DNA of 64,000 nucleotides from Adineta vaga. Lineage: Eukaryota; Animalia; Rotifera. The stretch lies in assembly GCA_021613535.1 (NCBI GenBank), contig CP075497.1:7254001-7318000 (forward strand), read 5' to 3'. Position numbers and translations under genes: made by a program. The notes below the pieces were generated by a model. That model was not told the DNA's origin. It did not search any database and saw only the letters and a program-made list of their open reading frames with translations. Below are positions 8,746-11,479 of this stretch, one piece after another; positions within the stretch are counted from its first letter, which is position 1, and each line of letters begins with the position of its first letter.

Positions 8746-9516
8746 TTACTTATAAGCAAGTAAAAGTTGTAGGCCATCTGTTGATTTTATTTTTTCAACT
8801 GATCGAAAACCAATTTGTTTGAGATATTTTTTTGAATAGATTTCTTTCGGATTTTCTTCTTCTTTTGTTGTTATGATCATATTTAAGAAGATATTCAATG
8901 TTAATGTTACTTCATCATCTTCATCTGTTGGAACAATAAGAATCAGAAGACTAGGTTTCATTGATGGTAAAATCTCATATGCTTGTTTGATTTTATCTTT
9001 TAAACAACCTTCTTGTCTCCAAATAATCATAACATCAATATTTTCATCAAATGAATCCAAAGATATCTTCGAATAAGTTGTTAAATCAATTAATTGCTTA
9101 ATACGTAATAACATTATTAAATGAATGGAATCTTTTAATGAATTCTTCAAAACAGTCCCATTGAATTGAGGCATTTTATCATAAAATTCTTGATCGAGAT
9201 TCGTTAAAAGTTTGCAATTTGGAAGAAAGAGATTTCGTGTAAAATTTGTTAATTTATACACAAAATTTTCTTTATCATATTCTAAAAATTTGATCGATTT
9301 TAAACAATCTAATACATCTTGTAAACATCGTGATTCATTTTCTATGTAATGTAATTTCAATCGTTGAGCAATTTGTGAACAAGTTAAAGCCGAATTTGTT
9401 GGTAAAAGTAGATCAAAGATTCGTAATTCTAATGAAGTAAATATGACACGTGAACGTATGAAACTTTGTGCTATTTCAAAGAGATATTGTTCACTATCAT
9501 AGATCGATAATGTCAT
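8746..9516 (-). CDS. O-methyltransferase-like protein (dimerisation domain plus degenerate methyltransferase domain), single exon
   Basis: N-terminal SRVIFTSLELRIFDLL...IAQRL matches the class II OMT/ASMT dimerisation region; C-terminal QAYEILP...LNM...GF..VE...AYK matches the OMT C-terminus; no DxGGGxG motif. Confidence 0.75.
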   Translation of the reverse strand: MTLSIYDSEQYLFEIAQSFIRSRVIFTSLELRIFDLLLPTNSALTCSQIAQRLKLHYIENESRCLQDVLDCLKSIKFLEYDKENFVYKLTNFTRNLFLPNCKLLTNLDQEFYDKMPQFNGTVLKNSLKDSIHLIMLLRIKQLIDLTTYSKISLDSFDENIDVMIIWRQEGCLKDKIKQAYEILPSMKPSLLILIVPTDEDDEVTLTLNIFLNMIITTKEEENPKEIYSKKYLKQIGFRSVEKIKSTDGLQLLLAYK

Positions 9517-9594
9517 CTAGAAAAAAAAACAACAACAAAATATGAAGAATTGAATTTCGATTTTGTACAGAAATGAGAAGAAAAGAAAAAGAAA

Positions 9595-10357
9595 TTAACG
9601 AGCAAAATTCTTTGTCCATAAACGAGCCATGCGATCATAATCAGTACGTTCATGTTTGTATTGTAAACCTAATTCTTTCATTGCACAATGATCTAAACGA
9701 GAAAAAGTTTTATATGATTAATATATTCTTTTGTGAAGAAAATGTTCTCATATGTACGATAGAATGAAATGTGAAACAGATTTTGCTCCACTTAGATACT
9801 AACCAGGTTCACATTGAACAAGTAAATTCGAGACTTTCTGAATAATTTGTCGAATTGTTACTGTTGGCGACCAGTTTTTATCGAATATATCATGTTTTAC
9901 TAATCCCGTACTTTGATAAATATTACAATGATATATTCTTGTTTTGAATTCGAGCTAAAATTAAATAGAATTTGTCGAAAAATAAATTTCAAATAGATTT
10001 TTCTTTACGGTAGGTGGTGTAAATGGATAATCATCATCGAATGTAAGCAAAGCGAAAAATGTACCGCCTTCATAAAGAGAATCAGGTTCTCCTTCGAATA
10101 CAACAAGCCATTGTTTAAGACTATCAGCAGTTGGACCAGCACTGAAAGAAAAAGAATCGAATATGACTAAAATGAATACAAAAAAAAACAAATCGATGAT
10201 ATAGACCAAGTAAATTTTACTGGATTTTGTTGAAGATCGAGACATTCACGTCGAAGTCTAAGCAACGAGAAGAGAATGATCAAAATATGATGAAAGAAAA
10301 ATAGAAAAATAAGTACCGATTGATAAATGTAGGATTTGAAGACGAAGTTGATGTCAT
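9595..10357 (-). CDS. UBE2D/E-like ubiquitin-conjugating enzyme variant with catalytic Cys replaced by Lys, 5 exons
   Basis: Spliced product: RLRRECLDL..NPVKFTCAGP...W...EGEPDSLYEGGTF...DYPFTPP/LEFKTRIYHCNIYQSTGLVKHDIFDKNWSPTVTI...YDRMARLWTKNFAR*. Confidence 0.88.
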
Positions 10358-10563
10358 TTTTGACAACTTTCATCAATATTCGTACTCAATACAATGCAAG
10401 GGCATACACAATAGACAGCTGTTTGCTTTTTTTCTATTGGTTAATGTCACCCATTGAATTATATAAAAATAGAGGCTAACGAATGTACGTATTGGATAAT
10501 ATCGATTCATTGAACTGATAGACAGACACAGACATATTTGAAATTTATTCATACATGTAAATC

Positions 10564-11479
10564 ATGTCTTCGTCAAATAGTAGTAACGAACATCTTGTAA
10601 GTTATACAGAAACTCTTACTTTTGTCGTAAAAATTTATAATTTTCTTTTGAAGAATCAAAATCTTGAAGCAAAACGTCGTCGAAACCTCGAAGATAATCG
10701 TCGTTTTCTTGCTGCATTGAAAATCAATGATGTAAGTCATTAATTCGATTACTTTCCAGACAATCCATTACAAAACTAATGTTGATAAGCTGAAACAGTT
10801 TCTTTCGAAGTATAAATCGAATAAAAACTAACCATCTGTCATATCCATCTATTAATATATACAGAAAAAAGAGTGTAACAGATGTTTGAATAACGATATT
10901 TAAAAACAAAACAGTTATTTATAACTCAAAAAATCTACTTTTCTAAAATTGAATTTAGATTTGTGATGATATTAAACAAATAAGGGTCGATACTGATCAT
11001 GTAGATGATGAAATAATCAATGCAGTAGGACGACGGGCAATGAAAAAGTAAGTCAATTTTGTATGTATTTTCATTCTATTGGATGTTCGTTATTGAAGAG
11101 AAATATCATCAGATACTATTCGTCGAAGTTCAAGAATTCGACAGAATATTGTTGAAAATGAAAATATTCCACCTACAGAACACAAATCAAAGAAGAAGAT
11201 AACAAAGAAAACAGATGAAAATCAAATACATGCTGTACCAAAAGTCAAATTAGTAATTGAAAGATGAATTATATATTTTGTAATTTTATTTTCTAAATTG
11301 TATTTTTTAGCAATTACCTGAACATATGTTAATACGATATCATTCAACGGGAAAAAAGGTTGCACTACATAATACCAAGGTAAATGGTTGTATATTATCT
11401 TAGTATAGTTTTGATTTCTTTTCTCCTATATATTTAGGCTAAGTTTGGTGATGATGATAATGAAAATCTATTGATGTAA
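10564..11479 (+). CDS. Small basic protein with EAKRRRNLEDNRRFLAALKI and RRSSRI motifs, ~6 exons (absent from ORF track)
   Basis: Consistent in-phase GT-AG splicing; the N-terminal helix resembles the 'E..R..NI..N...L..L' motif of WDR76/Cmr1- and CDCA7-type nuclear proteins. Confidence 0.65.

Follow-up and report, generated by a model that had tools for sequence, protein, structure and literature searches.

An expressed E2 variant of bdelloid rotifers with lysine at the catalytic cysteine position and a probable UBE2E ancestry

Background

Proteins with the fold of ubiquitin-conjugating enzymes (E2s) do not all carry a catalytic cysteine; ubiquitin E2 variants (UEVs), such as Uev1a/Mms2 and the UEV domain of TSG101, and AKTIP/FTS have the E2 fold without this residue and act by binding. 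This study concerns a gene for a protein of this kind, in which lysine is found at the catalytic position, located on the minus strand at 9595-10357 of a 64,000-nucleotide stretch of the genome of the rotifer Adineta vaga (assembly GCA_021613535.1, contig CP075497.1, positions 7,254,001 to 7,318,000). This whole stretch is referred to as the window, and coordinates without a contig name are those of the window.

Described E2s with which the rotifer protein can be compared include the animal UBE2E proteins UBE2E1, UBE2E2 and UBE2E3 (UbcH6/UbcH8/UbcH9/UbcM2) and plant COP10. UBE2E2 helps to bring COP1 to the cullin-RING ligase complex CRL4-DET1; its role in DDB1-DET1-DDA1-COP1 complexes is that of a non-catalytic scaffold, and a helix-loop-helix segment of DET1, termed "cup" or "claw", clasps its backside beta-sheet (PMC11864197; PMC12808801). 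UBE2E2 itself ubiquitinates no substrates in the CRL4-DET1 complex, in which its C139S form is as good as the wild type, and plant COP10, which has serine for the active-site cysteine, is its obligate non-catalytic counterpart (PMC11864197; PMC12808801). PMC11864197, with reference to Suzuki 2002 and Yanagawa 2004, describes COP10 as a protein that cannot be charged and whose partnership with DET1 is obligate and non-catalytic. In UBE2E2, contacts to DET1 are reported for T68, R88, R124, R126 and T201 (PMC12808801). Lysine at the catalytic position is known from engineered E2s, such as UbcH5/UBE2D1 C85K, which can be loaded by the ubiquitin-activating enzyme (E1) (PMC9675693, after Plechanovova 2012), and our literature search gave no report of a natural E2 with such a cysteine-to-lysine change.

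The results described below indicate that the rotifer protein is a functional, selected pseudo-E2, that is, an E2 variant, and neither an error nor a decaying copy.

Results and discussion

Lysine at the catalytic cysteine position

The exons of the window were searched singly, and in steps that called for a full-length protein the orthologue P0001 (157 residues, with 94% identity in exon 4 and about 90% over the whole protein) was used as a proxy for the window protein. Exons 3 and 4 each matched the Pfam family UQ_con (PF00179), with E 7.4e-10 and 8.3e-12, respectively, and the match of P0001 (E 3.5e-35) ran from position 1 to position 139 of the 140 in the profile. A phmmer search of exon 4 (50 residues) against PDB sequences returned human UBE2E2/E1/E3 as the top matches (E ~2e-10), with UBE2D2 at 4e-7, and aligned GLVKHDIF over GVICLDIL, placing residue K20 of the exon opposite the catalytic cysteine C139 of UBE2E2. 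One additional residue follows HCN-I in the rotifer protein in comparison with UBE2E. An AlphaFold2 model of P0001, with a mean predicted local distance difference test score of 87.8 and a predicted template modelling score of 0.81, superposed on the UBE2E2 structure 1y6l with Z 24.4 and a root-mean-square deviation of 0.9 Å over 148/148 residues, which indicates a full ubiquitin-conjugating (UBC) core, with four-stranded sheet, crossover helix and two C-terminal helices, and a structurally sound sequence register.

A reading of the window from its sequence only had assigned a lysine codon (AAA, 9897-9895) to the catalytic cysteine position, and the phmmer alignment to UBE2E1/2/3 bears this out. 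No cysteine was found at the fixed spacing after HxN in the window protein or in any orthologue, all of which have lysine at this site. The same reading considered a sequencing slip unlikely, on the ground that three base changes are needed to turn a cysteine codon (TGY) into AAA; this count is correct, and the codon at 9895-9897 showed no difference in any run, either in RNA contigs from three studies or in DNA contigs (X13). The motifs listed as retained are indeed present, as HCN and WSP in exon 4, YPFTPP (for YPF.PP) in exon 3, outside 9805-9954, and ARLWT (for AR.WT) in exon 5. The exon itself had been given as 9805-9954; the locus was right, but exon 4 spans 9804-9954, the extra G belonging to a split Asp codon. 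Translation of 9805-9954 on the minus strand gives LEFKTRIYHCNIYQSTGLVKHDIFDKNWSPTVTIRQIIQKVSNLLVQCEP. The substitution of lysine for cysteine at the catalytic position is thus confirmed.

The cysteine of HCN had been named as one that might occupy the active site instead. It was rejected as a replacement active site, because HCN is an ordinary UBE2E feature and is invariant in normal UBE2E enzymes.

The features of the gene, in the order of transcription, are as follows.

10317-10357, minus strand: exon 1, which starts with ATG (10357-10355) and encodes a short N-terminus rich in Ser, MTSTSSSNPTFIN, plus a split Arg codon (from translation)
10207-10257, minus strand: exon 2, encoding helix 1, LRRECLDLQQNPVKFT, plus a split Cys codon (from translation)
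10009-10141, minus strand: exon 3, encoding the beta-sheet core AGPT...YPFTPPT, in which the Phe of YPF is equivalent to F62 of UbcH5 (from translation)
9804-9954, minus strand: exon 4, encoding HCN, WSP, the crossover helix and the active-site loop that contains Lys (from translation)
9922-9930, minus strand: His-Cys-Asn (HCN), which in UBE2E proteins takes the place of the E2 motif HPN
9895-9897, minus strand: Lys codon AAA at the catalytic Cys position (from the phmmer alignment and the RNA and DNA contigs)
9595-9692, minus strand: exon 5, encoding the gate loop D-H-C-A-M with a bdelloid-specific Cys (9687-9685) and the C-terminal helices, with the stop codon TAA at 9597-9595 (from translation)

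Gene model and expression

The gene model was first deduced from the sequence and then checked against spliced transcript contigs. In an AT-rich window (28-34% GC), five exons (10357-10317, 10257-10207, 10141-10009, 9954-9804 and 9692-9595) with 157 codons encode a protein of 157 residues with a complete UBC fold. Contigs of runs X1, X5 and X8, which belong to three studies, omit exactly 9693-9803, 9955-10008, 10142-10206 and 10258-10316, and because these introns are removed the contigs, whose records carry only the label "RNA?", represent transcripts; the introns are retained in DNA run X13, and all four have GT..AG borders on the minus strand. Exon 1 is joined to exon 2 from 10317 to 10257 in the spliced RNA contigs, which also contain the two joints of exon 4 (9954/10009 and 9692/9804); the joints of exon 2 (10257/10317 and 10141/10207) are present in X1 and X5 and those of exon 3 in X1, X5 and X8. 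The start of exon 1 is shared by the orthologues (MSSSSSSN.TFTNR). The gene, whose lack of expression would have spoken against a functional role, is therefore transcribed and spliced.

Allelic differences were found at 9838, near the Lys codon, where the change is synonymous, and at 10217 in exon 2, where T>G exchanges Lys and Gln at a variable site that is Pro in most orthologues and Ala in L042. In the 5' untranslated region, transcripts of run X1 differ at 10386 by a 10-nt insertion, CAATACAATA. An out-of-frame upstream ATG is located at 10373-10371 on the minus strand, 16 nt 5' of the main start; the resulting upstream open reading frame of 22 codons spans intron 1, overlaps the main ATG, and lies inside the 5' end of the RNA contig of X1 and of a shorter X5 contig.

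Conservation in bdelloid rotifers

Lysine was present at the site in 9/9 distinct bdelloid orthologue sequences read, namely the window, P0001/L043, L036-40, L041, L042, L045, P0152, P0153 and P0151/L035. Apart from the window, the orthologues were taken from another transcriptome (P0001; L043, L044), from bdelloid contigs found in metagenomes (L036-L042, L045; P0152, P0153) and from the bdelloid Didymodactylos carnosus, whose genome is annotated (P0151/L035). The site is embedded in GLVKHDIF or GLLKHDIF, and in GQMKHDMF in Didymodactylos. Six orthologous loci encode this lysine by AAA and L042 by AAG, with synonymous variation in the neighbouring Gly, Leu, Val and His codons.

At least eight divergent loci have an uninterrupted reading frame. 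The ratio of nonsynonymous to synonymous substitution rates (dN/dS), computed per exon by the Nei-Gojobori method and then summed, was 0.03-0.08 among closer pairs, for which dS was 0.4-2.3 and partly saturated, and 0.12-0.22 against Didymodactylos. The values among the closer pairs indicate that the gene is under strong purifying selection and is not decaying. The checks of lysine conservation and of dN/dS across orthologues that the sequence-only reading had called for thus both spoke for a retained gene, and the change from cysteine to lysine was fixed before the sampled bdelloid rotifers diverged. No second Lys-type copy or ohnologue was detected in the assembly (100.8 Mb, six contigs), in which the next exon match was only 42% identical.

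Relationship to UBE2E proteins

UBE2E ancestry is the best reading of the sequence comparisons, although the tree alone does not prove it. The UBE2E1/E2/E3 proteins are the top matches in both sequence and structure, with ~40% core identity, and share with the rotifer protein HCN, WSP, YPF, the AR.WT helix and, past the crossover helix, the Cys in x-C-x-P. A profile built from the Lys-type proteins and their nearest relatives retrieved animal UBE2E proteins almost exclusively. In a 30-sequence UBE2E-type alignment that included the Lys-type proteins, H84, C85, N86 and C123 (the Cys of Q-C-x-P) were invariant; the UBC4/5-type paralogues of the rotifer genome have HPN, and one has HTN. In the maximum-likelihood tree the Lys-type pair fell within the UBE2E clade with support of 80/87, its stem being long (2.36 changes per site), and the genome's intronless UBC4/5-like genes formed a separate group.

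A search of the 100.8-Mb assembly with the UBE2E core found no canonical UBE2E; the best full-length match was 53% identical, and the exons with 67-77% identity recovered in this search were those of UBE2D with HPN. The Lys-type gene appears to be the sole UBE2E-type gene of this genome.

Two further groups of E2 sequences were observed. The genome contains a large set of intronless UBC4/5-like E2 genes with open frames of 146-216 residues that are 43-53% identical to the UBE2E core (for example C3:19359986, C3:19969479, C3:19977627, C1:11399559 and C5:15621266; L017-L028), some of them near-identical tandem copies. In addition, L009:697-1782 (plus strand), which corresponds to G000:C3 around 2489292-2489648, encodes a single-exon protein of 361 residues composed of a 200-residue N-terminal part and a divergent E2 domain; this domain contains HCN and KICHDIL, in which Cys is kept and followed by His-Asp as in the Lys-type proteins, and the protein was placed on a very long branch adjoining the UBE2E clade.

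Other active-site and closed-state residues

Besides the lysine and the extra residue after HCN-I, the rotifer protein differs from UBE2E in residues around the active site, in its N-terminus and in most of the reported DET1-contact residues, which are considered below. When aligned without gaps to UbcH5 and UBE2E, the rotifer protein retains the Asn of HxN (N77), the Asp that follows the active site (D87), the Phe of YPF (F62), the Ser-Pro of the loop that binds ubiquitin ligases (E3s) and both C-terminal helices. UbcH5 L104, N114 and D117 are replaced by Gln, Glu and His, respectively, in all close orthologues, so that only two of the five donor-ubiquitin/linkage residues (N77, D87, L104, N114 and D117) are kept and the set as a whole is not retained. 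In UbcH5, L104, N114 and D117 support the closed state of ubiquitin-charged E2 (E2~Ub) and reaction at the thioester.

The residue directly after the lysine is His in the rotifer protein and Leu in UBE2E. The gate-loop Cys (9687-9685), at the position of UbcH5 P118, is invariant in all bdelloid orthologues as D-H/N/Q-C-A-M and is absent from canonical UBE2E and from nematode Asn-type proteins, which are described in the next section. Only 13 Ser-rich residues precede helix 1, and the long N-terminal extension of UBE2E is missing; the canonical UBE2E members aligned, P0156 included, have extensions of tens of residues, with 53 residues before the core alignment in UBE2E2.

Cysteine loss in other UBE2E-like proteins

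Among ~270 related proteins surveyed for loss of the catalytic cysteine, lysine at the site was confined to the bdelloid clade. Cys-less UBE2E-like proteins outside the rotifers were P0154, P0155, P0160, P0172, P0176, P0177, P0173, P0180, P0130 and P0167. The catalytic site is occupied by Asn in Aphelenchoides besseyi, A. fujianensis, A. bicaudatus and the filariae Acanthocheilonema and Onchocerca, by Arg in Heterodera trifolii, and by Ser in P0180, P0130 and P0167. In P0167, which has two domains in tandem, the first carries Asp and the second Ser.

The nematode proteins resemble the rotifer protein in belonging to the UBE2E lineage, in having HCN together with TFF and E/VIEG-type motifs, and in having lost the catalytic Cys, at 43-44% identity; they differ in the replacing residue (Asn or Arg) and in clustering with nematode Cys-bearing UBE2E. 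The rotifer clade joins a fast-evolving nematode group only at a weakly supported node. The Lys-type of rotifers and the Asn-type of nematodes were therefore not taken to have a common origin, since the nematode forms sit among nematode Cys-bearing UBE2E, and the losses look independent. As far as these sequences go, the recurrent loss of Cys shows that the UBE2E-like lineage has a function that can survive without it.

The UEVs and AKTIP, by their descriptions, differ from the rotifer protein in being old and separate subfamilies, whereas the rotifer protein is a recent derivative of an otherwise canonical E2 class and has preserved HxN, the Asp that follows the active site and the two C-terminal helices.

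A non-catalytic scaffold and its possible partner

On balance, and with modest confidence, we favour the reading that the rotifer protein is an obligately non-catalytic E2 scaffold of the UBE2E type, plausibly the partner of DET1 in the DDB1-DET1 (CRL4) complex. With Lys replacing Cys, the protein would be unable to form the canonical E2~ubiquitin thioester and would act non-catalytically; its backside beta-sheet would be held by the DET1 "cup", and the protein would serve as a COP10-like, obligately non-catalytic subunit of the complex.

DET1 is encoded in the rotifer genome (Pfam Det1 matches at G000:C2:3182786-3184425), and a protein search gave bdelloid DET1 sequences plus three distant ones. 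The rotifer DET1 cup aligns to residues 285-327 of human DET1, with D289 kept and W304 changed to Tyr. The cup shows 92% identity across 14 bdelloid DET1 sequences, a conservation equal to or above that of the other parts of the protein, which suggests that it still binds something; in conjunction with the Lys-type protein as the apparent sole UBE2E-type protein of the genome, this led us to propose a COP10-like subunit. The partnership is also plausible by analogy. UBE2E2 is already non-catalytic in DET1-COP1 complexes (PMC11864197). COP10 of Arabidopsis, a component of DDB1-DET1-DDA1 that was compared by its description only, has a full UBC fold without the catalytic Cys, as does the rotifer's only UBE2E-type protein, in a genome in which DET1 is present. 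COP10 differs in having Ser where the rotifer protein has Lys, the losses in plants and rotifers being independent, and DET1 binding is only proposed for the rotifer protein.

Several observations weigh against the scaffold reading and its DET1 partnership. Among the DET1-contact residues, R126 is kept, as it also is in UBE2D, R124 is replaced by Lys (Arg in Didymodactylos), and T68, R88 and T201 are replaced by Gln, Leu and Arg, respectively. On the other side of the interface, rotifer DET1 has Asn for D324, Gln for H297 and Ile for F320. The E2/DET1 interface would thus either have co-evolved or have been lost. No match to DDA1 was found in the genome, a result that is uninformative since control genomes gave no match either. 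With respect to ancestry, an approximately unbiased test did not reject the grouping of the Lys-type proteins with the genome's UBC4/5-like paralogues (p 0.31), and UBE2E ancestry therefore leans on motifs and best matches besides the tree. Finally, Lys-His-Asp is strictly kept while its neighbours vary (GLVKHDI vs GQMKHDM), which hints that the lysine itself may matter in a way that a pure "dead site" model would leave unexplained.

Alternative explanations

The sequence-only reading had offered three possibilities, namely an E3 decoy, a ubiquitin sink or stable E2-Ub mimic, and a UEV-type pseudoenzyme. The pseudoenzyme part held, as the gene is expressed and constrained and its lysine is kept, whereas the isopeptide mimic is not supported, for reasons given below.

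The most serious alternative, although we consider it rather unlikely, is that the protein is an E2 variant that works without catalysis but whose partner is not DET1, either as a UEV-like cofactor of an active E2 paralogue or as a competitor for a RING/U-box E3 or for E1. The constraint on the gene and the lost catalytic residue fit this explanation equally well, the change of most of the UBE2E2 residues reported to contact DET1 (PMC12808801) agrees with it, and the genome's large, diversified E2 repertoire could supply partners; moreover, Cys-less UBE2E-like genes have also been kept in nematode lineages. However, the data yield no candidate partner, the bdelloid DET1 cup is strongly conserved with no other UBE2E-type protein to fill it, and the operon neighbour of the gene (described below) is unlinked in Didymodactylos.

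It is improbable, in our judgement, that the protein is a natural stable E2-Ub, in which E1 would load the lysine and the isopeptide could not be discharged; such a conjugate would serve as a decoy for RING E3s, as a ubiquitin sink or as a constitutive "charged-state" signal. The invariance of the lysine and the adjacent His-Asp across bdelloids amid varying neighbours is consistent with such a role, as is the retention of N77, D87, the basic helix 1, F62 and the Ser-Pro of the E1/E3-binding face. The engineered C85K E2, which E1 can load as noted above, has lysine at exactly this catalytic position of a UBC4/5/E-class E2, and the UbcH5b C85K~Ub structure 9yea was a top structural match, among the closest obtained. 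The engineered protein, however, keeps all other catalytic and closed-state residues, of which several are changed in the rotifer protein, among them the donor-ubiquitin and thioester-site residues at L104, N114 and D117 (Gln, Glu and His). In addition, the published loading protocol for C85K UBE2D1 calls for 24 h at pH 10 and 35 °C, with E2 at 180 µM (PMC9675693). The tolerance of Asn, Arg or Ser at the same site in other UBE2E-like lineages also speaks against a conjugate on the lysine, since it implies that the retained function generally needs no nucleophile.

Even less probable, as we see it, is that Lys-His-Asp constitutes a working site, at which E1 would charge the lysine slowly, perhaps with the aid of His, to give a permanent, non-dischargeable conjugate on RING E3s or on the DET1 complex.

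A relocated nucleophile, with the gate-loop Cys (D-H-C-A-M) taking over thioester formation and Lys and His assisting, appears very improbable. This Cys, placed by ungapped alignment, is invariant in the orthologues and absent from canonical UBE2E and Asn-type nematode proteins, and its loop presumably borders the active-site cleft; but the geometry of E1-to-E2 transfer is tight, the residue before the Cys varies (His, Asn or Gln), and we know of no precedent for a relocated nucleophile in E2s.

A sequencing or assembly error or a drifting pseudogene has a negligible chance of being correct, because, although the very long stem to the clade resembles that expected after released constraint, it is refuted by the identical Lys codon in independent RNA and DNA data sets, by splicing and expression, and by the intact frames and low dN/dS of the divergent loci.

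Neighbouring genes

A second gene follows the E2 gene on the same strand.

8746-9516, minus strand: truncated ASMT-like (ASMT/HIOMT) gene encoding 256 residues, with a Pfam PF08100 dimerisation domain (E 2.5e-13)

The ASMT-like gene begins 78 nt past the E2 stop codon (spacer 9517-9594), in an operon-like arrangement, and both genes are found on a single contig in X1, in X5 and in the relative L043. Its protein matches human ASMT weakly and at both ends only (residues 11-74 and 271-334); the dimerisation domain and the C-terminal end are kept, and ~100 residues of the middle of human ASMT are missing. The gene pair is syntenic in several bdelloid contigs, and the linkage is absent in Didymodactylos, so that the ASMT-like neighbour was dropped as a functional clue and no functional inference was drawn from it.

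On the other side of the E2 gene, a divergent neighbour at 10527-10700 (plus strand) is represented by a plus-strand RNA contig with a 57-nt GT..AG intron at 10597-10653.

Conclusion

The known Cys-less E2 variants are the UEVs, AKTIP and plant COP10, which has Ser at the site; what is new in the bdelloid protein is the lysine residue. The retention of the rotifer gene under strong purifying selection and the apparently independent losses in nematodes lend evolutionary support to the recent biochemical claim that non-catalytic scaffolding in CRL4-DET1-COP1 ligases is the conserved job of UBE2E proteins. The rotifer protein is also a natural test case for whether an active-site lysine may be charged under physiological conditions.

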